Assembly: GCA_002104905.1 (NCBI GenBank)
Contig: MCFE01000001.1
Coordinates: 62,001 to 126,000, forward strand
Length of the DNA: 64,000 nt
Direction of reading: 5' to 3'
DNA from: Basidiobolus meristosporus CBS 931.73
Lineage: Eukaryota > Fungi > Basidiobolomycota
Shown here: positions 22,711 through 64,000 of the stretch, piece after piece
Layout of the letters: every line of letters begins with the position of its first letter
Position numbering within the stretch: the first letter of the stretch is position 1
Program-made: the position numbers and the translations under genes
Notes under the pieces: model-generated
Seen by the model: only the letters and a program-made list of their open reading frames with translations
Told to the model about the DNA's origin: nothing
Database searches by the model: none

Positions 22711-25700
22711 ATGTCTACTACTGCTATTACTGGAATTTTTTCTCTGCTGAAAAGTTGGATGGATCTAACTACCAAGTGTGGAAGGTGAAGATGAAGATGC
22801 TGCTACAAGAAAGAGGCCTTTGGGATATTGTCATGGGAGAAGAATGCCCTCCTAAAAACGTGGGAGAGGAAGCCTTAAAGTACCAGAAGAAAGAACAAAG
22901 TGCCTTTAACTGCATTTGCCTTAATGTCAAGGACAAATTGCTAATTCAATGCTCAAGAGCAAAAACGGCAAAGAATGCCTGGAAAGCATTGGAAGACACC
23001 TACCAGTCATGTTCAGCTGCCAAGAAAATGTATCTGAGACAAAAATTCTTTACTACAAAGATGCTGCCAGGTGAAGAAATGAAAAATCTAATTAACAGAA
23101 TTACCCTGCTGGTAGATGAGATGGAATCTGTGGGCGTACCAACTACTGATGAGGATGTGATAGTTACCATCCTGAATAGCCTGACAGACAAGTTTCAGGG
23201 TCTTGTATCAGCCCTAGAGTCCAGAACTGACGATTTGACCTTATATTATGTATATGGAAGGCTCCTGGATGAAGAATTAAGAAAATCAAGCGCCAATAAA
23301 AAGGAAGAAAAAATGCTTTAATAAGCAATGATAACCAACAAAGGAGGTACCCAAGACCCTACAAAGGCAACAGCAACCTATTTTGCAACTACTGCAAGAG
23401 GAAAGGACACACATCAGACTGGTGTCTCAAAAAGAGAGATTATCAGCAAAAGAAGCCTGAATATGGAAATGCTGCAACAACTGAAGATAGACTATTCATA
23501 TCTGCACTAAATATGACCACAAACAAGGATTCTCAGACGTGGTATATTGACTCTGGAGCTTCTTAACACTTTACACACCAAAAAGAACTTTTTACCCAAT
23601 ATCAAGAAATTCCAATTAAGAAGGTTTTCATGGGCAACAATAGAACACTTGATGCAGTGGGAGAAGGAACCATCCAAGTAAACCTTAGAAGCAGTGAAGG
23701 AAGCCATACACTGACCTTTAAAGAAGTACTCTATGTACCAGAAATAGCCAAGAACCTACTCTCTGTAAGCAAGGCCACAGCAGAAGGACTCAGTTTCACT
23801 TTTGACAATTCTGGATGCAGGATCACTGATAAAAATGGTGCCCATATTGCTTTGGGCATCAGAGATCAGAATCTATACAAGTTGACTTATATTCCATCAT
23901 ATTTGGAAGCCAATATAAGTAACTTAAGTGAAGAAACACCAATGCTTTGGCACAGGAGATTTGGACACATCAATTTGGATTATTTGCGTAAAATGATCAA
24001 AGATCAGCTAATTTCTGGAGTAAGAATTGATCCCCCAGCTAGTTTGGAGCACTATGAAGCCTGCATACATGGGAAACAAGCCAGACAACCATTCCAGAGC
24101 TCTGGGTTAATCAAAACTAAGAAAAAATTAGATCTAATTCACTCAGATCTGTGTGGACCTATGCAAAATTCATTCTTAGGCGGGATGAAGTATTTAATCA
24201 CTTTTATTGATGTTTATACAAGATACACATGGGTCTACTTCATGGAGAGAAAGGAAGAAGCTCAGTCTAAGCTCAGGGAGTTTAAAGACATGGTGGAGAG
24301 AGAAACTGGTGAAAAAATCAAGAAAATACGCCCTGACAATGGTGGAGAATATACCTCAAAACTCTTCATCCACTTCTGCAAAATTCATGGGATAAAGCAA
24401 GAGACTACTGTACCATACTACCCACAGCAAGATGGAGTAGCCAAACGAGCTAACAGATCAATAATTTATATGGCAAGATCTATGATCCATGATCAAAAAT
24501 TATCCTACGATTTTTGGGCGGAATCAGTTGCCACTGCTGTATACCTTAAAAATAGGAGTTATAACAGAATACTTCGTGATTCTACTCCATTTGAAGCATG
24601 GTATGGATGCAGACCAAGTGCAGAACATCTAAGAATATTTGGGTGTACAGCATATGCCAAAAAACAGGCCGGAAATCAGTCAAAATTTGAGCCAAAAAGT
24701 GTAAAATGTAAATTTTTGGGCTACTGCAATGAGAGTAAGGCATTCAGACTCTACAATACCCAAGCAAGGAAGCTTATCAAGTCCAGGGATGTGTTGTCTG
24801 ATGAAAATTCAAAATTTTCACAAAAAATGACATCAGATGATGACGAAAATTTGATCTCAAGTCCACCAATTGTCAGGATTGAATCAGAGCAAGACAATGA
24901 AAATTTTTTCACTCCAGAGGACTCTGCAACCGTGGTTCAGCCAGAATCAGTGCCCAGGAATATCCCAGAAGTGATCATTCTGGTATCAAATGCCCGGAGA
25001 CCAAATCAGACAAGAAATAGCCCAAATTACTATATTAATGAGGGTACAAACTTAGCCTATGCCTACTCAGTCCATATTGGTGAACCCCAGACTGTAAAAG
25101 AGGCCCTAATTAGCCCTCAGACAAAGTTTTGGAGATCTGCAATGACTGAAGAATATCAGGCCCTGATGGAAAATCAAACTTGGGACTTAGTCAAATTACC
25201 AATCAACCAAAAATCAATTGGATGCAGATGGGTCTTCAAGACAAAATACAAGGCTGATGGTACAATTGAAAGATACAAAGCAAGACTTGTAGCCAAAGGA
25301 TACTCTCAAACAAAAGGACTCGACTATACTGAGACCTTTGCACCGGTAGCCAAGTTTAATTCCATCAGATTAATTTTGGCTATTGCAGCCAAATATACGC
25401 TTTTTATTCATTAAATGGATGTAAAAACTGCATTTTTGAATGGAGAACTTGATGAGGGCATGTATATGGACCATCCTGATGGATTTGTTGACCAATATAA
25501 CCCCCATTTGGTCTGCAAGCTTAAAAAGTCACTATATGGTCTCAAACAATCACCAAGAGCCTGGAATTGCAAGATAGATTCTTATTTGGAATCTTTGAGT
25601 TTCAAAAGAAGTAATGCTGACTATAGTATATACTATAAGCCAGATAGAGCAAATCCAGTTCTATTAGCTCTATATGTGGATGATCTTATTATAGCTGCCA

Positions 25701-26653
25701 ATAACCTAGTTACATTGGAAGAAACTAAATCCAGCCTATCTAAGGAGTTCAAGATCTCTGATTTAGGAGAACTTAGTTACTACTTAGGGGTTAAGTTCGC
25801 CATAGACAGAAGTACCCAGACTATCACCCTAAGCCAATCCAAGTATATTCAAGATATACTAAAGAAGTACCAAATGGAAGACTGTAAACCAGCAGCTACC
25901 CCAATGGAGACAAACATTAACTTGGTCAAAACTCAACCAAATCAAGAGAGCTTGGTGCCATCTGAAAGCCCTGACTTCCCTTATCAATCTATGGGCGGCA
26001 GTCTGATGTATATCATGCTTGGAACATGTCCAGATATCTCATATTCAGTGGGAGTTGTCAGCCAACATAATCAGAACTATGGATCTGATCATATTGCAGC
26101 AGTTAAGCGGATTTTTAGATACCTAAAAGGAACTGCTGATATTTGCTTAAGATACACTTATAAGGACTCAGAACAAGATCTTGTGGGATACTCTGATGCA
26201 GATTGGGGACGAAATTTAGAAGACAGAAGATCCACCACACAATACACCTTTCTTTAGTGTAAAGGAGCAATTCCATGGAATTCAAGAAAGCAACCAACTG
26301 TAGCACTTTCCACCACAGAGGCAGAGTATATGGCAGCCTGTGAAGCTACAAAAGAAGCAATGTGGTTAAGAAAGCTGTTTTCAGATTTAGGCCTATGTCA
26401 AAAAACGCCTATTACTTTATTTCAAGATAATCAAGGATGTATACAATTAGGTAGAAATCCAACTTTTCATGCTAGAACCAAGCACATAGATATTAGACAT
26501 CATTTCATACGTGAAGCTATAGAGAATTACTTAGTTAGCTTAGTTTACTGTCCTACAGATGAAATGATTGCAGACATATTTACCAAACCATTAGCTAGAG
26601 ACAAGTTTGAATATCTCAGGTCAAAATTAGGACTAGTCAGTATGAACATTTAG
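22711..26653 (+). pseudogene. Copia gag-pol with a few lesions
   Basis: KLDGSNYQVWK gag start, CNYCKRKGHTSDWC, WYIDSGAS*, HRRFGH, HSDLCGP, LYVDDL and YSDADW; frameshifts near 22740 and 23320; stops near 23565, at 25412 and at 26255. Confidence 0.92.
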
Positions 26654-31269: not shown

Positions 31270-32154
31270 TTACTCTTCATAATGCTCCAGACACATTTCT
31301 CTCAGTGGATGTCTTCTTGTATGAACATACTGTGCATTAATAAGTATCTTAACTATTTTACCTATTCTGCTGTTTTCACCTATATATGACTTTCCTCTGT
31401 ATTTACCTGCCAATATGCTGAATCTCTTCAGATATCCAAATGTGTGCTCTACCCTTACTCTGAAATGATTAAATATCTCATTGTAGAGCTTCTGCTTCCT
31501 GCTAAGCACACCATTCCTTGGCTTCCTATAAGCTGTAATACATCCTAATCTCTGACAATCCTCTCCTATATAGGCTAAGTCTGCCATACATTTCTCCCCT
31601 CTACTGAATTCAGGATGATTCTCTACCCAGAGTGCTCTGTCATGCCTACTTCCAGCAAATGGCCCACTAAACCAGATGATGTTACCCTCAATGTCAGACA
31701 GTGCTTGAAACTTCACACAGTGTGCCTTGTACTTGCCAGAATAAAAGTGCCTCTGCCCTCTAGAAGGTCTGTTAATCCTCACTGGGAAGGTATCCAAAAT
31801 ACTCCTGATATGGAACCTGTTGCTGAACACTCTGGGATATGGAAGTCTATTGGAGCTTCTGAACCTAGTATTCCAAGCTTGCTCTAAGTCATTCATACCC
31901 TCTGCAAGGTGGTTCTCCATTGCTGTCAGCTGGGAATGAAAGCTTCTAGGACTTTTGTTGCCATGGATGGTGGGATGAAACCTTGTAGGGCAATAGTTCT
32001 TGTAATAGCAGAGAAGCTTAACAAGGAATCTCCTTGAGTAGATTGGGGTTGATGGTCCACAGTACTTGGTATAGATCTCCTCCAGTGTGTCAAAAGGAAA
32101 TCCAGTGGTAGTGATGGGATTGATGAGAAAAGACCATTCAGATGAGTAAGTCAT
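31270..32154 (-). CDS. DDE_Tnp_4-type transposase, 294 aa, intact
   Basis: SILDTFP (D), YSGKYKAHCVKFQ..SGPFAGSRHD, MADLAY (D) and YN..FNHFRVRVEHTFGYLKRF (E). Confidence 0.9.
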   Translation of the reverse strand: MTYSSEWSFLINPITTTGFPFDTLEEIYTKYCGPSTPIYSRRFLVKLLCYYKNYCPTRFHPTIHGNKSPRSFHSQLTAMENHLAEGMNDLEQAWNTRFRSSNRLPYPRVFSNRFHIRSILDTFPVRINRPSRGQRHFYSGKYKAHCVKFQALSDIEGNIIWFSGPFAGSRHDRALWVENHPEFSRGEKCMADLAYIGEDCQRLGCITAYRKPRNGVLSRKQKLYNEIFNHFRVRVEHTFGYLKRFSILAGKYRGKSYIGENSRIGKIVKILINAQYVHTRRHPLREMCLEHYEE

Positions 32155-44896: not shown

Positions 44897-46315
44897 CTAT
44901 TCTACGTGGAGGTGGCCACGGGCCTCGTGCGCGGCCACCTTCATGATGAACGATACTTGGTTGGCGACATCGCGCAGGGAGCCGATGACGATCCCATTGC
45001 CTTTGATGAAGCCGTGGTGATGGTACTCCAGGTCAACCTCATCGCAGAACTCCTGGACGAGAGGCTGAACGCGTCGGAGATTGTGGCGAGGCACCCGTGG
45101 GAAGAGGTGGTGGATGGTTTGGAACTGCAGTCCACCATGGAACCAGTCGAACCAGGCGGGGCAGTCGACATCCATAGTGGTACGAAGCTGGCGAGAAGCG
45201 AAGCTCTCATCCGGGCCGTGGTCATCGGTGGACATCCCGTAATGGGAAAGGGTGATCTGAACGTGGAGCATCATGGTGAAGACGTGGGATACCATAATGT
45301 ACATGAAGATCATCCCCCAACTAGGAAGGAACGACACCAGATAGGAATACCACGAGCAGAAGAATGCCAGTCCCAGCAGCTCCCACTTACGAAGAGGGGC
45401 GTGCTCGTCGGTGATTAGGAAGATTAGCCCCTGGACGTAGAGGTTGAACCTGCCAAAGCAAAGGATGGGATAGTACAAGTAATGCTGGACCGAGATGAGC
45501 ACCTTGGAGGCGCCGTCGAATTCCAGGATCTTGTTGTGGTAGGTGGAGAACAGGTTGTTGAAAAACTGGGACGTGACTGCAAAGAAGGGTAGGAGCTGGA
45601 TGTCGGGGTCGTGCTCGGGATGGTTGGTGATGATGTGATGAACGTTGTGGCTCTTCTTCCACCAGCCGATGGACAGGCCGCCCAGGTAGTTGCCCAGGAG
45701 AATCCCGATAACGCTGTCATACTTCATGTTCTGGGTGATCTCGTTGTGGCCGGCATCATGGGCACAGAAAGCGCTTTGGTGCCAGACGAAAGCGTTCGCC
45801 AGCGCAGCAATGAGATAGTTCCAGTAGGTTTTCGGTCCCCAGAGGATCAGGCCCACCATGATTGCAAAGGCGATAGTGCAACGGATGGCCTCCCACGCGT
45901 AGCACCGATAGTTCGTTTCGTACAGACCAAGCGAGCGAATCTTTGTATCAAGGCGCTTGTAGGACTCGGAAATTCTTTGCTGGGCTTTCAGATCGACCGT
46001 GCGGCCTGCGCTCATGAGAGGCTCTTCCACCAGATCTCCGACGTAGAAGTGCTTCATTTTCTTGGTGAGGACCCATTCGGGATGCATCGCCTGAACCACG
46101 TCAGTGGCATCTTTACCGAGCATGTGTCTCACGGCAAGCTCACCACCAGGATGGTACTTGATCCATTTGTTCAATTTGTAGACCTGTGCCTTATAGATGA
46201 TTAAGATCTCCCCGTTCTGTACGCGGGTCCTCACCTCCGACATGGTGAAAGACGGAGGCCCATGTGGCAAAGGGGTGTGGACATGAACTGCCTCAAAGGA
46301 CTGTGGAGGAGACAT
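44897..46315 (-). CDS. SLD1: Cytochrome b5-fused front-end desaturase, most like sphingolipid delta-8 desaturase; intronless
   Basis: HPGG, HDAGH, HNVHH and QTIHH boxes in a 472-aa ORF. Confidence 0.88.
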   Translation of the reverse strand: MSPPQSFEAVHVHTPLPHGPPSFTMSEVRTRVQNGEILIIYKAQVYKLNKWIKYHPGGELAVRHMLGKDATDVVQAMHPEWVLTKKMKHFYVGDLVEEPLMSAGRTVDLKAQQRISESYKRLDTKIRSLGLYETNYRCYAWEAIRCTIAFAIMVGLILWGPKTYWNYLIAALANAFVWHQSAFCAHDAGHNEITQNMKYDSVIGILLGNYLGGLSIGWWKKSHNVHHIITNHPEHDPDIQLLPFFAVTSQFFNNLFSTYHNKILEFDGASKVLISVQHYLYYPILCFGRFNLYVQGLIFLITDEHAPLRKWELLGLAFFCSWYSYLVSFLPSWGMIFMYIMVSHVFTMMLHVQITLSHYGMSTDDHGPDESFASRQLRTTMDVDCPAWFDWFHGGLQFQTIHHLFPRVPRHNLRRVQPLVQEFCDEVDLEYHHHGFIKGNGIVIGSLRDVANQVSFIMKVAAHEARGHLHVE

Positions 46316-55586: not shown

Positions 55587-57345
55587 TTAATCGAGGTGAA
55601 GGGTAGCGAGACTTTTGGCCCTTTGATCCAGAACTCTCTGGCGAAGGGATTGTTGCTCTTTGTGGAGAGATTTGCTCTGCTTCTTCTCGGAGCGTCGGTT
55701 CTTTCTCTCCTCCTTGATCGCAGCCTTTCGTGCCTTCTTCTCCTCGGGGGTTTCCTTCTTAGAGCGAGGGACTCCCTTGTTGATCTTCTCCGCCGTGTCC
55801 TCCTCTTCCTCTTCATTCTCCTCCTCCTCGGCCTGTTGCTTGGGCACCTCTACGACGGGAAACCCGTTTTTGTCGAATTTGATCCTACGTTTAGGCTCCT
55901 CACGAATCAGCGAGGGATGGTTGTCCAGGTTGGAGTAGGTACTCAGGATAGACTCGCAATCCCACATCTCCCTCTCCCTCTCGGCCCTCGACGCCACCGG
56001 CATGAGCATGGGGGTGGAGTCCTTCTCATATTTGGGGGGAGCGTTCATCTGTTGCTTTTTTTCCTCCAGACTGACCTCCAGGAATGCCTTTCTCATGGCC
56101 TCCAACTTCTCCTCCGAATCCCCCTCCAGCTTGGGGACCATCTTCTTACCCACCAGCTCGTACTTGTCCAAGAACTCGTCCAGGATATCGTCCAGGTCCT
56201 CTCGCTCCGGTCTTTCCGAATCCGACTCCGACTCGGTCTCGCTCTCCTCGTACTCCTTCTCGACCTTGTCGAACTGCTCGTCCAACAGAGTGAGCTTGTC
56301 GTTACGGAACATCACGGAGGAGGACATGGTGAAGTTGGTTCGGGTGTCCTCTTCGTACTCGTCATCCGAATCATACTTGGCTCCCATGTATCTACGGGCA
56401 GGGTGAGCGGTGAGTTGGGGCCGGTTAGGTCAAGTGGTACATGTAAAGGTTACCTTCTGATATTGGCCCATCCGGTGGTATCCTCCTCATACTCCTCATC
56501 ATCATAATCAGCGTAATCATCGCCATACTCCTCACCCCCTTCCGCGTCCAAGGATTGGATAAAGTCCTCATCCAAATCTCCATCATCGATGCCATCCTCG
56601 TCGTCCAAAGCCTCCAGTACTGCTCTCAATTCGGGGTCCATGTCGGGTTGTAACCCTTGAAGATCTTCGGGTAGGGCGGACTGATTCATCACACCGGTGG
56701 AGAGCTCATACTCGGAGGGCAAGGCGTCCTGTGGGAGGTCGAAGGTAACCTTTCTCTCTCTTCTAGAGGAGACGGAAGCCTGAGAAGTGTGAGCCGGCGA
56801 GGTCGGAAGCAAAGAGGAAATCCAGGGACTTACCACGTCATCGTCGACGAACTGAATCCCCGTATGTCTGGTCTTCTCCTGCTTTTTGGGTGCGGCTACG
56901 AAAACAGCATCAGGGTTCTCGCCGATGGGACGTAAATGCTGGGTGTAGTCGTACTTGGAATCATCATAGTAGATTCCGTACAAGGCAGCCTGTCCGATGC
57001 GTCTAGACAGAGGAAAGTGGGTTTAGAGGTTTGGCCAATATGACTTCGCCCTGGAGCGTTGAGCGTTATTTGTTGGTATTTACTCTTCGAGATCTTCCTT
57101 GTTCCCCTCTTGCGCTTCAAGACGTCTCTCCTCCTTGTTCTCTTTCTAAATTCAACCTGATCAGTATGGCCTCTGTAGCATACGGTCCGGTTTCCGTATC
57201 TAACCTTTGCTACGTTCAAGGGCACCACTTCTCTTAACACTCTGCTGGAGGAGTCACCATCACCAGCCAGGGGATCACGCTGGGAACGATGGACCACCTC
57301 GAAGTGGCGAGCGTTTTTCCGATCGATAAATTGCTTCTTTCCCAT
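55587..57345 (-). CDS. LTV1: 40S biogenesis factor LTV1, multi-exon
   Basis: MGKKQFIDRKNARHFEVVHRSQRDPL, YGIYYDDSKYDYTQHLRPIG, FTMSSSVMFRN, WDCESILSTYSNLDNHP and ETPEEKKARK. Confidence 0.95.
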
Positions 57346-57535: not shown

Positions 57536-58921
57536 TTAATCGACCATGATCTTGGAATCCAGTTGCTGGTACTCTTCGAAGAAGGCAGTGAACAATTGGA
57601 TGGACTGCTTGACATCCTCAGTACCGCACATCTCACGAATACTGTGCATGCTCAATTGCGGCGCCCCGACATCAATCGTACGCATGCCCAACTTGGCACT
57701 CAAGATAGGGCCAATGGTGGAGCCGCATCCCATGTCATTTCGGACCACGAATTCCTGAAGTGGGATGTGGTGGGATTTGGCCAAAGCCTTGATAGCCAGC
57801 GAAGTGGCCGATGTGGTTGCGTATCTCTGGTTAGCGTTCACCTTGATGACAAGTCCCTTGTGCATCGCGGGGCGGTGGTTCTCCTCATGTTTCTCGGGAT
57901 AGTTGGGATGGACGGCATGGGCCATGTCCGCACTGATCATGAAGCTTTTGTGGATCGATTCCTCGAATCCGGTGGTGTTCTCTCCGGACTGTAGTCTGCG
58001 CAGAGTGGCCTCTAGCAGATGCGAGTTCGCTCCGTAGGCCGATTGGGATCCGATCTCCTCATGATCGAAGAGTGTCACCATACGAATGTTGGCATCCTCG
58101 CTCAAAGACTCTAGAGAATTGATCAGGGCATCGATGGAGCAGTGTGACATCAACAGGTTGTCAAGGCGTGGCGAAAAGATGAATTCGTCCATGGCACCAC
58201 CAATGGCGGATGGCTGGGTATCGTAGAGGCATAATTCAAAGTCCTGAATCTTCTCTCCGGAGACCCCCAGTTCCTTGGCCAACAACTCGATCAAGACCGA
58301 ATGATGCTTGGACATCTCGTCCGATCCTTGGCTTTCTACGGCTTTGGAGTTCAAGGCCTTGGCTGCGGTGGCAAGGACGGGGGTGAGATGGGTCTCCTTG
58401 TTCAGGGTGAAGTTCTCACCTGAGCCACGGTCCAAGTGAATGGCTAGGTTAGGTACGCGAAGAATGGGTCTTGCAATTCGTACCAGTCTGCTTTGGTAGC
58501 TGCCGTCTTCATTCGCCACCATCACTCTTCCAGCAACACTCAGATCTCTGTCAAACCAGGTGTGCCATAAGCCACCACCGTAAGTTTGAACGCCCACCTG
58601 AAGGTAACCCTCCTTCTCCTTCTTCGAAATGGGCTTCATCTTCAGACAGGGACTGTCAGTGTGCGCTCCCACAATGGAGACCCCGTTGCCTTGCACAAAC
58701 TTGCCACCCACGGCGAAAGCGATGATGGAGGACTTGTTACGGGTGAAAAAGTATTTTCCGTTTTGTTTGATCAGTCCAGCCCAGCTTTCTTTTTCCTTGA
58801 TCTCCACGAAGCCCGCTCCTTCTAGCTTCTTCTTGCTCTCCTCGACCGCATGGAAAGGACTTGGACTGTTGTTCACAAAGTCCAGAAAGTCTTGGGCATA
58901 GGCGAGAGAACTCTTCGACAT
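57536..58921 (-). CDS. APE4: M18 aspartyl aminopeptidase, intronless
   Basis: GAHTDSP, WFDRDL, RLDNL, DHEEIGS, SADMAHAVHPNY and QLSMHSIRE; ATG at 58921. Confidence 0.95.
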   Translation of the reverse strand: MSKSSLAYAQDFLDFVNNSPSPFHAVEESKKKLEGAGFVEIKEKESWAGLIKQNGKYFFTRNKSSIIAFAVGGKFVQGNGVSIVGAHTDSPCLKMKPISKKEKEGYLQVGVQTYGGGLWHTWFDRDLSVAGRVMVANEDGSYQSRLVRIARPILRVPNLAIHLDRGSGENFTLNKETHLTPVLATAAKALNSKAVESQGSDEMSKHHSVLIELLAKELGVSGEKIQDFELCLYDTQPSAIGGAMDEFIFSPRLDNLLMSHCSIDALINSLESLSEDANIRMVTLFDHEEIGSQSAYGANSHLLEATLRRLQSGENTTGFEESIHKSFMISADMAHAVHPNYPEKHEENHRPAMHKGLVIKVNANQRYATTSATSLAIKALAKSHHIPLQEFVVRNDMGCGSTIGPILSAKLGMRTIDVGAPQLSMHSIREMCGTEDVKQSIQLFTAFFEEYQQLDSKIMVD

Positions 58922-58967
58922 TGTAAAAAGAGGAGGAATGATTGGCAAGGTGGATGTTTTTCCATTT

Positions 58968-59203: not shown

Positions 59204-62200
59204 CTATGGAGACTGCGGCGTGCTGTTGGTTGGCAAAAGGGCCAACTTCTCCAGGGTGAATTCCTCGATACAATCGTGAATATAATCATTGTGAAGGGTA
59301 ACCGCGTCCCCGAAATGCTCGAACAGGTGCTCTTTGACGTCTCTTCGAGTGATCGAATTGAGATTGGAGTCCTTGAGGAAGAAGTACACCTCTTCCCGCA
59401 ACAGCCGCTGCACTAGCGCTGTCTTGGAGCCATTGGTGGGCCCGTTCAGCAGATGGGAATGGTCTCGGTTGGAACTCCGGTCGCTTTCCGGTCTGGACCT
59501 GGGTTGGGATTCTGTCTCGTTGGTAACGGCGTCTAGATGGCGTGAGTAAAAGGATAGTGTTCTAGAGGATCGGGTGTAGTCACTGCTGTACTCGGATTGC
59601 TGCATGGAGCTGTAGGTGACTTGCGAGAGGCGGCTGGCGGATTTCGGGGAACAGCTTATTGAGAGTGGCTCGTCGTTGTCCAAACTTTTGTGCGATGCGC
59701 CGCTGAGATGATGGGTTTTCGAGATGGTGCTCCGGGAGGATTGATATTCAAAGGGCAGGCTGATCAAAATCTCCTCTGCTTTCTGATCCACTTGCGTTGT
59801 CAGATCCGACTCCACCACCTGGATCCCCGGAATGGTATCCGTGGAACTGGCATCCTCCACCGAAATTAGTTGTTGTGTTCCATCTCCGAGTCCATCCTCC
59901 GCATTCTCCAGCTCATCATATTCGGCGATGGTCAACAATGAGATCTGCATGCTGACTTTGTACTGGCTGCTGGTGTCATCCAAGATCCCGTGTTTACGAC
60001 GGATCGATTTGGCCCCGGTTGGGATGGTGTCCACCCACCTACGGTCGTCACGGTGCCACAGCGAATACAGCGGGATGATAAAGCAGTAGAAGGGAAGGGA
60101 GAAGAGGAGCGCAAAGACCAGCCAGAAGACCGATGAAAACATCCCCCGCACGGCCAGAATCATAACATTGAAGCCCAGCATGCAAAGCAGCGTGGCTCCC
60201 ACCACCAAGTACGATAGCTCGTCTGTGGCAACACTTCGGATCACCACATAGTATAAATAGAGCAGAAACACCGGCATAACCATGTGACTCAGCAACTTCA
60301 CTCCTGTGACAACCTGATGGATCAGCCCTCGATGCACCCTGGCCAGCTCGAAGTGGCTGTGAAATGCCGCGCTGGTGGCCCTGCCTTGTTGCCCAAGGAA
60401 GACAGAGAATATTGGGGTGAGTTTGGTGTAGAAGATTGCGGAACTCTCGAAGCCTAGCCGCAACTGGGGAAAAGTCTTGAGCAGGATGACGGAAAAGAAC
60501 GAATCCTCGCCCAGAAGCAGTGTGTTTTGCAGATGCATTGTGTTCGGTCTGGGTGTACTGAATCCAACGATGGCCGAGGTATCCACCACACAAGGCTTGT
60601 TGTCGGCGAATTTGATCCGGTACATGGTGCATGGGCCATGTAGAAAGTTCACCCCACCGACCATCGATTCGAAGGCCGGTTTGAAGTGATGTGTCATAAA
60701 GAAAGGGTAGACTTGAAGCATCGTAATGAACGAGTCCGACGGATTGGCTGGCTTCACATGGCCTGAGAGAGCCATCAGTTGCTGGTTCTGGTCCATTCGA
60801 TCGATTAATTTAGAGAGAGCTCCTGGGGTGACATACGTATCAGCGTCCAGTACCAATGCATACTGGAATGAGCGCGGATCCATCCCGATCACGTTATTGA
60901 TGTGGTGATATAGCTCGTATTCTAGCGGTGTTAGCTTGTTGTGAGGATCCAAAAGGCCCTCCAGTAGGTTCCACATGATCAGTACTGAGTCCCGCTTACC
61001 ACGGTTGCCTGCATAGCGAATCTCCATGGGATTCCCACACTTGACCACCACCACATAAGCAATTCGATGCGTTCCGCATGAATAGAAACCTGAGTAGACC
61101 TTGGCCAGGTTGACATTCTTGTTCCCCTCGCCCAGAGAGATGTAGGCCTTTAGCTCGGGTTCAGGGCCACTAAAGCCCAGCACATCTAACACAAGCTGAT
61201 GTGTGTATACGGTGGATCCAGGTGGAGTGAAGACCCCGTCGCAGATAACCATCAACAGCTTATTGCTATCATCCAAGTTTGTTCTGGCCACACTGTCAAA
61301 ATTCAGTTTCAAGGTCAGCTGGTCCTCTCCGTAACAAGGCACCATCACGATACAGTTGGACGATGGCATCAACTTCCCTTTGTGTGGGAACTCTAGCAAT
61401 GCCACTACAGTGTAGGTGGTAAGAATCATGAAGGGAAGGCCAAGAGTGAGCCAAAGAATGGGGTTGAAGGAGTTGCATCTTGGATAGACGACCTCCTTCA
61501 CCGTGCCTTTGTAGAAAAGCTTGTCCATACAGCGCAAGTAGATGTCGCTGTGCTCCAGTTTGCTAAACGGCTCGGTCGCATCCTGGCCTACATGTTGGAC
61601 GATCAGGTCGGTGACGTCGCGCGGAAACAATCGGGCATCCGGGTCAGCTTCGGAGTACTTGATCAGGTCGGAGACATCATAGAGGTGATCGTTCACTATC
61701 ATGTGGCCCAGTTGTGGCGTATCACTGCTTCCTAGGATAGAGTAATCAAAAACCAGATCTGTAACACAACACAGCAGCATTAATTGTATGCAATCAACAG
61801 CAACTCCAAGCATGTATCGTTACCTCCAATGGTTGCCTTGGCTACTTCGAAACGCACAGAGATGTTGTAGAAGCAGTGGGTGGACGCCCGAGTGGGCTGA
61901 ACCATCGGTCTGTCTGCTGGACCAGGGCACTCGATCAGCTTCTGGTTGGAAACGCGATAACCAGGATCGTTGAATATCCTCTTCTCCAGCCAATTATCCG
62001 CTTTGGTTAGGTTGTGGATGCAGCGATTAATCTCATGATCAGGATACTCGGTGGCTCCTCTGGTGCGCGCAAGCAGGGTGAATGAGGGAAACATGGGGGA
62101 TACATCCTTGCCCAAATATCGCCTAACCTCCTCCCCTACCGTGGATGTGGAGTGAGACAGATCAGCGATCTTCCCATTGATGGCGACATATTTCGACCCA

Positions 62201-62771
62201 CTCAACTCCTCAGGCGAGTACAGCTGCTTGGGAGTGCAATAGGAGTATGGAACGATCTCCACCCAAACAACAAACAATGAGGACACACCCAGCATGAGCA
62301 GGAACAGAGTTATTTTCTCTCGTAAAGATTGTCTAGAGGCTGTATCTGGGTTAGTTGGCTGTGGAGATGGCAGGCGGACCACAACCTACCGGCATCTTTT
62401 CCCCCCAGCCATGTGAGTATAAGATCTGGAATAAGAAGAGTGAAGACCCGTGAAATCAGCTCCCAGCCTCTCCGAGTTTTGGATGGATTTGGGTAGCCGT
62501 GCGACAATGCGAGCGAATTTTGGGAACCTCTTCGAAACGATCCTGCCTCTGACTGTGACGCGTAAAATTTCTCGGCCTCAAACGATGGAAGCTTCTTGTG
62601 GTCATCCCATGGATTGAAGTTGAACTGTGTAGTGTATTCGCCATCTTTACATGGTAATATCAGCGTTTGACTGAGTGACAGCGCAAGAATGTGCGTACCT
62701 TGTGACCCTCTGTGACCGCGAAGTTGCCGATATAACGAAGGTTTGCTGTATTTCTTGTTTGACGATGTCAT
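59204..62771 (-). CDS. Chitin-synthase-like protein (cyt-b5-like, GT2 core, TM, DEK_C; no myosin head) with degenerate catalytic motifs, 1132 aa
   Basis: Exons 62771-62699, 62644-62390, 62339-61824 and 61758-59204 sum to 3399 nt; VPCYGE, ICDG, GNRGKRDS, LDADT and C-terminal DEK_C-like ITRRDVKEHLFEHFG. Confidence 0.9.
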
Positions 62772-63277: not shown

Positions 63278-64000
63278 ATGGTATGTGCTTGCGCACTAGC
63301 GGTTTGGTAGAAGAACTGGAAAGTAATCGTTCTTTGTTGGACTTTATTTAGTTTAGAAACCAATACGATAACGACATTTCTACTTGGAGTCCACAAGGAC
63401 GTATCCATCAAGTGGAATACGCCTTGGAGGCTGTCAAACAAGGTTCAGCCGCAGTGGGTCTGCGCTCAAATACCCACGCCGTGTTGGTTGGTTTGAAAGT
63501 AAGTACAACGCCGATCTTGTGATAGCACAATGCGGACGAACCCGGATTAATGGGACGTTGCCAAACAGAGAACCCCTGGTGAGCTCGCCTCCTACCAAAA
63601 GAAATTGTACCGTGTCGATGACCACATGGGGATTGCTATCGCTGGATTGACTTCGGATGCCCGTGTCCTAAGGTATATGACATATGCAGCAACAGATCTA
63701 AGCACCACTCTCTTGTCCACAAAATTGACCTCGTTTGTAGTAACTTCATGAGAGCTGAAGCCATGAAGTCAAAGATGCTCTACAACCGCCCCCTTCCTAT
63801 TCTTCGCATCGTTTCAGCCATCGCTGACAGTAAGTGGATTTGCGTGGTATATAATGGACACTGGCTAATCGTATCTGATAATACCAGAGGCCCAAGTCAA
63901 TACTCAAAACTACGGAAACAGACCTTATGGTGTCGGATTGCTCGTGATTGGATACGATGTTCGTACTTTGCTCGTTTGTTGATTGGTTTCATGTAGCGTT
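63278..64000 (+). CDS. PRE5: 20S proteasome alpha-6 subunit (PSMA1), partial; runs off the window
   Basis: ATG-only first exon, then [51 protein letters not shown] and [11 protein letters not shown]. Confidence 0.95.

Follow-up and report, generated by a model that had tools for sequence, protein, structure and literature searches.

What can a chitin synthase-like protein do when the motifs of its acceptor and product side have been replaced and those that hold the nucleotide sugar have been kept? The question is raised by a chitin synthase-like (CHS-like) gene of the fungus Basidiobolus meristosporus CBS 931.73, located at 59204-62771 on the minus strand of the stretch of DNA analysed here (the window; 64,000 nucleotides, positions 62,001 to 126,000 of contig MCFE01000001.1). 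All coordinates below are those of the window. The gene has 4 exons and a coding sequence (CDS) of 3399 nt, which encodes 1132 amino acids with 0 internal stops. An initial annotation, made by eye from the DNA and its translations, regarded it as a single odd paralogue, either a pseudoenzyme or a new glycosyltransferase; in reality it belongs to an old family, and the absence of QXXRW from that family has already been noted (PMC5122149). Comparison with its relatives shows the gene to be, as far as sequences can tell, a selectively maintained member of an ancient QxxRW-less clade of division-2 CHS-like GT2 membrane proteins, found in Basidiobolus and Mucoromycotina. Judged by residue conservation, the donor pocket is intact, and the parts of the channel entrance have been remodelled in concert.

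Chitin synthases are antifungal targets, and QxxRW is held to be indispensable in processive GT2 enzymes. In the clade the QxxRW Trp is gone, yet strong purifying selection has preserved the donor pocket from a time before the divergence of Basidiobolus and Mucoromycotina. The interest of the finding rests more on the question posed by a synthase fold without QxxRW than on the window gene alone.

Motif states of the window protein

The donor-side motifs, which lie between 60836 and 61339 on the minus strand, are kept in the translation, as the initial annotation had claimed for each of them: PCYGE (61339-61325; canonical form PCYxE), ICDG (61246-61235; canonical CDG), GKRDS (61000-60986) and DADT (60847-60836). 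Their first residues are amino acids 422, 453, 535 and 586, respectively.

Five other motifs, all on the same strand, are rewritten. In interfacial helix 1, QxxEY is replaced by QVYPF (60701-60715, first residue 630); the E and Y are present in 100% of canonical synthases, and the Pro is found in 92% of the clade. The initial annotation had recognised this motif one base away, at 60702-60716. GEDR is replaced by GEDS (60500-60511, first residue 698), in which an invariant G and E are followed by the retained acidic base, and the Arg is lost. QRRRW is replaced by QQGRA (60377-60391, first residue 738), so that the Q and the third Arg are kept and the acceptor Trp is lost. Towards the C-terminus, SWGxTR is replaced by RWVD (60029-60040, first residue 855); here the Trp is invariant, and the Gly has become Tyr in Mucoromycotina and Val in Basidiobolus. 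For these three motifs the initial annotation had given EDS at about 60500, QQGRA at exactly the position found and RWV for the late SWG, and it was equally right that the general-base Asp survives (D700). Its statement that all acceptor- and product-side motifs are rewritten holds for the four that it listed; it overlooked the fifth, the equivalent of the VLPGA gate motif, where TCLPGCF is replaced by FLHGPCT (60626-60646), and it also overlooked the retained third Arg of QRRRW.

Gonçalves et al. (2016) required D, D, D, QxxRW of a bona fide chitin synthase; in the window protein D455, D586/D588 and D700 are present and the Trp is absent. The QxxEY and EDRxL signatures are also absent, the corresponding residues being QVYPF and GEDSF. 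In an alignment of the clade profile to the Chlorella virus hyaluronan synthase, the clade consensus LQSRN falls opposite QQTRW, and the QQGRA of Basidiobolus shares the alignment columns of LQSRN. The two alignments together confirm the identity of the residue that matches the missing Trp.

Conservation in the clade and in canonical enzymes

Residues were compared between 39 members of the clade and 101 canonical division-2 synthases. QRRRW and TCLPGCF are intact in all 101 canonical enzymes, as are the E-Y pair of QxxEY and the D-R pair of EDR, in agreement with the near-invariance that the initial annotation had attributed to QRRRW and EDR; EDRXL and QRRRW have been described as conserved across all chitin synthase classes (Li et al. 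2016). Measured against these frequencies, the motif changes in the window gene are far beyond chance.

The clade retains nearly all of the donor-side positions that are invariant in canonical enzymes (E426, D455, G456, N498, K521, G523, E527, G532-D538, D586, A587 and, at 95%, D588), and the core residues of the donor motifs (the E of PCYxE, DG, GNRGKRD(S) and DAD) are 95-100% conserved, as they are in the canonical group. Further canonical-invariant positions kept in the clade are G614, N620, Q630, E645, H690, N693, G698, E699, R741, H748 and W856. The altered positions are E633, Y634, K642, F648, the TCLPGCF motif at 652-658, R701, Q738 (kept by 31% of members), R739, R740, W742, N744 and G857, together with G611, C613, E615 and T616. 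Several of the replacement residues are themselves close to fixation: A611 (100%), S613 (92%), P633 (92%) and Q739 (95%). At the base position, 700, the clade has Asp in 46% and Glu in 54% of its members. The division between a kept nucleotide-sugar side and a rewritten acceptor and product side, proposed in the initial annotation, is thus correct and sharper than was stated there.

The rewriting, including that of the fifth motif, is common to the window protein, its paralogue in the same genome, two genes of Basidiobolus ranarum and the Mucoromycotina clade (Mucorales, Umbelopsis and Jimgerdemannia). In the Mucoromycotina proteins QxxEY has become LQ(I/V)(F/Y)P, GEDR has become GE(D/E)(Q/R/K/S), QRRRW has become (L/Q)Q.R followed by a non-aromatic residue, and SWGxTR has become W(Y/V)D.

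The roles of these motifs are known from cryo-EM (cryogenic electron microscopy) structures of chitin synthases, as reviewed in PMC12653383. Motifs 1-4 form a “substrate-binding tub”, and the ED contains the catalytic base. QNFEY, VLPGA and QRRRW make up the entrance of the chitin-translocating channel, with a salt bridge joining QNFEY and QRRRW; the third Arg of QRRRW contacts the diphosphate of the donor and the Trp binds the acceptor (PMC12653383). When these roles are laid over the conservation pattern of the clade, it can be seen that the clade has preserved its tub along with the diphosphate Arg and the carboxylate, and has remodelled the channel entrance together with the SWG loop.

Phylogeny and spread of the clade

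In an unrooted maximum-likelihood tree, the 4 Basidiobolus and 24 Mucoromycotina proteins are split from the class IV and V-like synthases with support of 100/100. The split persists when all columns of the rewritten motifs are removed. Trees in which the Basidiobolus proteins are forced beside the V-like or the class IV group are worse by 53 log-likelihood units, and the approximately unbiased test gives them p-values (p-AU) of 0.005-0.006 (0.005 for the V-like group). The clade lies outside both groups and is not placed inside superclass V. Branching within the clade mirrors the species tree, through Basidiobolus, Endogonales (Jimgerdemannia-like), Umbelopsis and Mucorales, and the domain architecture is constant throughout: a cytochrome-b5-like (cyt-b5-like) region, Chitin_synth_2 (CS2), DEK_C and no myosin head.

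A search of 5.8 billion proteins recovered as closest relatives the paralogue from the same genome (P0003, 71% identical) and two proteins of B. ranarum (P0001 and P0002, 71-73%). These are followed by about 24 Mucoromycotina proteins annotated as “chitin synthase-domain-containing”, at 35-40% identity, and only then by canonical synthases. A profile search of 1.84 billion representatives found only about 20 clusters scoring at least 550 bits, after which there is a gap down to 403 bits; the matches from 403 bits downwards are canonical synthases with intact motifs, mostly of 1.8-2.0 kaa (thousand amino acids), the length typical of myosin-fused class V/VII enzymes. Members that can be named include proteins of Rhizopus delemar (RO3G_08731), Mucor, Backusella, Hesseltinella, Umbelopsis and Jimgerdemannia. 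Among the matches inspected there was no member from other Zoopagomycota, Mortierellomycotina, Glomeromycotina, chytrids or Dikarya. The range of the clade is extended beyond Mucoromycotina by the Basidiobolus genes.

Duplication and selection in Basidiobolus

Gene order in the window matches that on the B. ranarum contig of P0001 (L001): in both, an M18 aspartyl aminopeptidase gene and then an LTV gene come after the CHS-like gene. This makes P0001 the positional orthologue of the window gene. The loci of the other pair, P0003 in B. meristosporus (L002) and P0002 in B. ranarum (L003), have upstream neighbours in common (CDC24, with a PB1 domain); an M18 gene also comes after P0003, and the contig with P0002 ends just past the gene. 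From the synteny of both pairs it follows that a segment with the CHS-like and M18 genes was duplicated before B. meristosporus and B. ranarum split, and that both copies have been retained in both species. The old duplication marks a segmental or a whole-genome event.

In the last exon pN (the proportion of nonsynonymous differences) is 0.08-0.15 (0.05-0.11 for the catalytic core), and pS (that of synonymous differences) is 0.73-0.9, with synonymous sites saturated. The ratio pN/pS is at most about 0.16 in all domains, including the pairs that contain the window copy; since pS is mostly beyond the Jukes-Cantor limit, this value stands as a bound, and the few finite dN/dS estimates are 0.05-0.13. 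The initial annotation called the gene maintained, and this is borne out by the intact open reading frame (ORF), the low pN relative to pS, the positional orthologue in B. ranarum and motifs shared as far as Mucoromycotina. It had also named dN/dS as the check on a young pseudogene. That possibility is rejected by the intact frame and splice sites and by the bound on pN/pS, and the rewritten motifs are conserved in the relatives.

Predicted structure

An AlphaFold model was built for residues 405-880 on the clade alignment and is of moderate confidence, with a pLDDT (predicted local distance difference test) of 71.7 and a pTM (predicted template modelling score) of 0.76. The pLDDT falls to 44-54 in model blocks 231-250 and 271-300, which flank the rewritten QVYPF, gate and GEDS motifs. 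The model predicts a GT-A domain, an interfacial helix bearing QQGRA and three long helices after it. In Foldseek it matches hyaluronan synthases, with template modelling (TM) scores of 0.54-0.62, and the chitin synthases of Candida, yeast and Phytophthora, both groups with expect values of about 1e-14; over the hyaluronan and chitin synthase structures together the TM-scores range over 0.5-0.62. The solved relatives found by sequence (phmmer and the clade profile) are hyaluronan synthases only. According to the model, the membrane-integrated GT-A fold of the processive GT2 synthases is retained. Hydropathy of the window protein shows 1 strong N-terminal membrane segment, 1 right before the catalytic domain and 3 after it.

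Possible functions of the clade

On sequence grounds a retained donor site and acidic base are favoured, and the protein may be either an altered enzyme or a pseudoenzyme. In our view the chance is about even that it remains a transferase, binding UDP-GlcNAc but treating its acceptor or product differently. UDP-GlcNAc would be bound in the retained donor tub, and glycosyl transfer, or hydrolysis of the donor, would most likely still be catalysed. Absence of the Trp platform, and of the salt bridge that links interfacial helices 1 and 2, would make the protein handle its acceptor or product unlike a processive chitin synthase, so that either a product other than ordinary long-chain chitin would be formed or a different acceptor would be glycosylated.

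Several observations weigh against such an altered but active enzyme. The acceptor Trp of QxxRW is kept in the solved processive GT2 synthases that were found (QQTRW in the hyaluronan synthase of the Chlorella virus) as well as in 101/101 canonical division-2 enzymes, and its loss is the classical argument for inactivity. Two members from Mucorales, P0023 and P0028 (Cokeromyces and Benjaminiella), have DAN in place of DAD, and the Thr of DADT has become Ile or Val in P0018, P0019, P0022 and P0027; given these changes, catalytic competence may differ between members of the clade. The free switching between Asp and Glu at the general base would fit a relaxed catalytic geometry. The stems of both clades in the tree are long, so that long-branch attraction may be responsible in part for the grouping, although the shared domain architecture and a branching order that follows the species tree argue for real common descent. 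Finally, of the four Basidiobolus genes it is the window copy that has evolved fastest: its terminal branch is 0.26, compared to 0.089 in the orthologue, and it has 68 private substitutions, compared to 15-26 in the three relatives. Seven of these are at clade-conserved sites (E508S, F546L, E604D, D606N, T676S, M691L and S851R).

Alternatively, the protein could be a non-catalytic pseudoenzyme in which the UDP-GlcNAc pocket serves as a ligand module, and which acts as a scaffold, a sensor or a partner (for example in a heterodimer) of active chitin synthases. We regard this as possible, if somewhat unlikely. QRRRW has lost the acceptor Trp and its first two Arg residues, QxxEY its E and Y, and EDR its Arg, and the gate motif is gone as well, as would be expected of such a protein; the DAN of some Mucorales and the alternation of Asp and Glu at the base point the same way, and strong purifying selection is compatible with a non-catalytic role. 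Pseudoenzymes, however, usually lose their catalytic and metal-binding residues first, whereas this very deep clade shows little or no variation in the first Asp of DAD, the diphosphate Arg or the base carboxylate. Moreover, the replaced motifs have not drifted but have been rebuilt into new conserved motifs, and the transmembrane helices around the channel are retained. That the motif changes are simply tolerated by means of compensating residues, and that the protein is an ordinary chitin synthase with a normal chitin product, is distinctly unlikely. The match to Chitin_synth_2 is indeed very strong (357 bits) and the donor-side motifs are identical to the canonical ones; furthermore, hyaluronan synthases are processive even though they have no QxxEY and have a GP-type gate like the HGPC of the window protein. 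Yet alanine substitutions in QRRRW are reported to abolish the activity of yeast Chs2 and Chs3. The QxxRW Trp, which is universal among the canonical enzymes compared here and present in the aligned hyaluronan synthases, is described as the acceptor binding site (PMC12653383).

A further alternative concerns the window copy only: it might be redundant and, under relaxed constraint, be on its way to becoming a pseudogene, the paralogue carrying the function. The long terminal branch, the excess of private substitutions and the seven changes at clade-conserved sites would all be expected in that case, and the public gene model of the locus is merely partial. It is nonetheless very improbable, as the frame runs uninterrupted by stops or frameshifts through 3.4 kb, all splice sites are preserved, pN/pS remains within the bound given above in all domains of the pairs with the window copy, the changes at conserved sites are mostly conservative (F>L, E>D, D>N, T>S, M>L), and the duplicate has been retained since before the two Basidiobolus species split.

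Returning to an altered but active enzyme, a more specific proposal is that the clade as a whole is an active membrane glycosyltransferase that works without the QxxRW Trp and makes a product that is not chitin. On the present comparisons we think this speculative and rather unlikely. Candidate products may be zygomycetous wall polymers, such as those containing glucuronic acid, defined short chito-oligomers, or a conjugate of GlcNAc to lipid or protein. To our knowledge, the synthases of some zygomycetous wall polymers, for example the glucuronic-acid-containing ones, are unassigned. Were the proposal true, a re-engineered acceptor side and channel entrance would have been demonstrated for the first time in a synthase fold of the processive GT2 type. 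What role a conserved synthase fold plays without QxxRW has in any case become a testable question, concerning proteins that published classifications have discarded as dubious. The clade is present in agents of mucormycosis and basidiobolomycosis, so that any contribution to their walls would be of practical value. In Mucorales, nikkomycin removes only one chitin allomorph, and the many synthase families are without assigned roles (PMC11437000).

Relation to known synthases

In 2015 Mélida, Sain, Stajich and Bulone (Environ Microbiol 17:1649) reportedly described “class VIII” chitin-synthase-like proteins of Mucoromycotina. Gonçalves et al. (2016; PMC5122149) treated proteins without D, D, D, QXXRW as “considered as dubious” and dropped class VIII on that ground; the supplement of that paper gives the class as Mucoromycotina-only (“VIII* Mucoro (Melida)”), without accessions. 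This class VIII and the present Mucoromycotina clade are probably one and the same. A literature search on RO3G_08731 gave no match, and no literature was found that links Basidiobolus to the QxxRW-less clade. It appears that this kind of protein had been noted already and that its presence in Basidiobolus is unreported. The window protein resembles class VIII in that it is without QxxRW, groups with Mucoromycotina proteins such as RO3G_08731 and has the same cyt-b5-like/CS2/DEK_C architecture. It differs in coming from Basidiobolus, which is currently placed in Zoopagomycota, in forming a sister branch and in its motifs, with HGPC versus NGG(F/L) at the gate, WVDT versus WYDVW and QQGR(A/I) versus LQSRN. 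In the Mucoromycotina proteins (for example P0005:294-858) about 100 extra residues with much low-complexity sequence lie between the gate motif and GE(D/E) and split the Pfam match to CS2 in two; the insertion is absent in Basidiobolus.

The likeness to the class V/VII myosin synthases (such as CsmA/CsmB and Mcs1) consists in Chitin_synth_2, the cyt-b5-like region, the C-terminal DEK_C and identical donor-side motifs. The best canonical relatives have the length of the myosin-fused class V/VII enzymes, about 1.8-2.0 kaa, and the myosin head (PF00063) is listed for P0030, P0031 and P0048. In contrast, the window protein has no myosin head, its QxxEY, TCLPGCF, EDR Arg, QRRRW and SWG are replaced, and it is not nested in the V-like group. 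The descent from class V/VII without the myosin head that the initial annotation suggested is therefore right as to the missing head and plausible from DEK_C and from the myosin-type best canonical hits, but the trees do not place the protein inside the V-like group.

The highest TM-scores (0.54-0.62) are to the class I hyaluronan synthases (Chlorella virus HAS and Xenopus HAS1; PDB 7sp6 and 8smm). These likewise are without QxxEY and have a GP-type gate, SGPLGMYR compared to HGPCTMYR in the window protein. They differ in keeping QxxRW (as QQTRW) and in having no cyt-b5 or DEK_C, and they are 14-16% identical to the window protein.

Gene model, locus and surrounding window

The CDS was assembled from three overlapping ORFs through 3 GT..AG introns of 54, 50 and 65 nt, all on the minus strand, which upholds the intact 1132-residue frame and clean introns of the initial annotation. 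Exon 1 (62699-62771) begins with the start ATG at 62771, which aligns with the annotated paralogue starts in L002 and L003. Exon 2 (62390-62644) encodes the N-terminal region, including the first hydrophobic segment, and has the 54- and 50-nt introns on either side. Exon 3 (61824-62339) carries the transmembrane segment at residues 117-142 and the region next to it, and its translation is 72-80% identical to those of L002 and L003. Exon 4 (59204-61758) holds the cyt-b5-like region, the GT2 domain, the C-terminal transmembrane helices, the linker, DEK_C and, included in its coordinates, the stop codon. The paralogous gene in L002 is 3694 letters long.

The Chitin_synth_2 (GT2) match, together with the C-terminal membrane helices, extends over 59951-61363 on the minus strand (Pfam PF03142, E 1.8e-106) and covers positions 24-514 of the 527 in the profile, and thus the entire catalytic domain. 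The initial annotation had also seen cyt-b5-like and DEK_C domains. DEK_C, at 59258-59401 on the same strand, is above its cut-off (PF08766, 28.6 bits against 24.8) and is carried by the Mucoromycotina members too; the cyt-b5-like match at 61499-61708, also on the minus strand, is weak and lies just under its cut-off (PF00173, 21.6 bits against 23.7), the paralogue P0003 scoring 31 bits. No Pfam match to the myosin head (PF00063) was obtained in any exon of the window gene.

The public model of the locus, K493DRAFT_250389 (P0004), is labelled “partial”; its 755 amino acids are 100% identical to the protein described here and span only about residues 129-883 of 1132, omitting the first exons and the C-terminal linker with DEK_C. 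A full-length, corrected gene model is now supplied for the locus. An assembly or sequencing error as the source of the unusual motifs is ruled out, as the independent assembly of B. ranarum shows the same motif states.

Downstream of the CHS-like gene, the M18 aspartyl aminopeptidase gene lies at 57536-58948 on the minus strand, in a position that it also occupies in L001 and L002; it is a syntenic marker and stands outside the CHS-like function. The LTV gene (55590-57345, minus strand) comes next in the window and in L001 only. Virus-like chitin synthases beside a UDP-GlcNAc dehydrogenase are a precedent for clustering with genes of related function; the loci of Phycomyces, Umbelopsis and Jimgerdemannia share no neighbours, and gene clustering gave no hint of function there.

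The ratio of observed to expected CpG (CpG o/e) of the CHS-like gene is 0.76, equal to that of adjacent genes, so that the initial annotation was also correct in calling its CpG normal. The window as a whole falls into two parts. From 1 to 42000 the GC content is 0.40 and the CpG o/e 0.09, and at about 42 kb there is a sharp switch to gene-rich DNA with a GC content of 0.50-0.57 and a CpG o/e of 0.76-0.81. The CpG-poor part contains Copia-type retrotransposon ORFs (23630-26257, plus strand) and a Harbinger-type DDE transposase (31273-32154, minus strand), and the CpG pattern fits a methylation-driven loss, or one resembling repeat-induced point mutation, that is confined to repeats. The most GC-rich stretch, at 42-46 kb (GC 0.54-0.60), includes an intronless ORF of 472 amino acids for a cytochrome-b5-fused fatty acid desaturase (44900-46315, minus strand). 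Upstream of the CHS-like gene, a short ORF at 63605-63751 on the plus strand resembles, by eye only, a fragment of a proteasome alpha-subunit and is probably an exon of the next gene.

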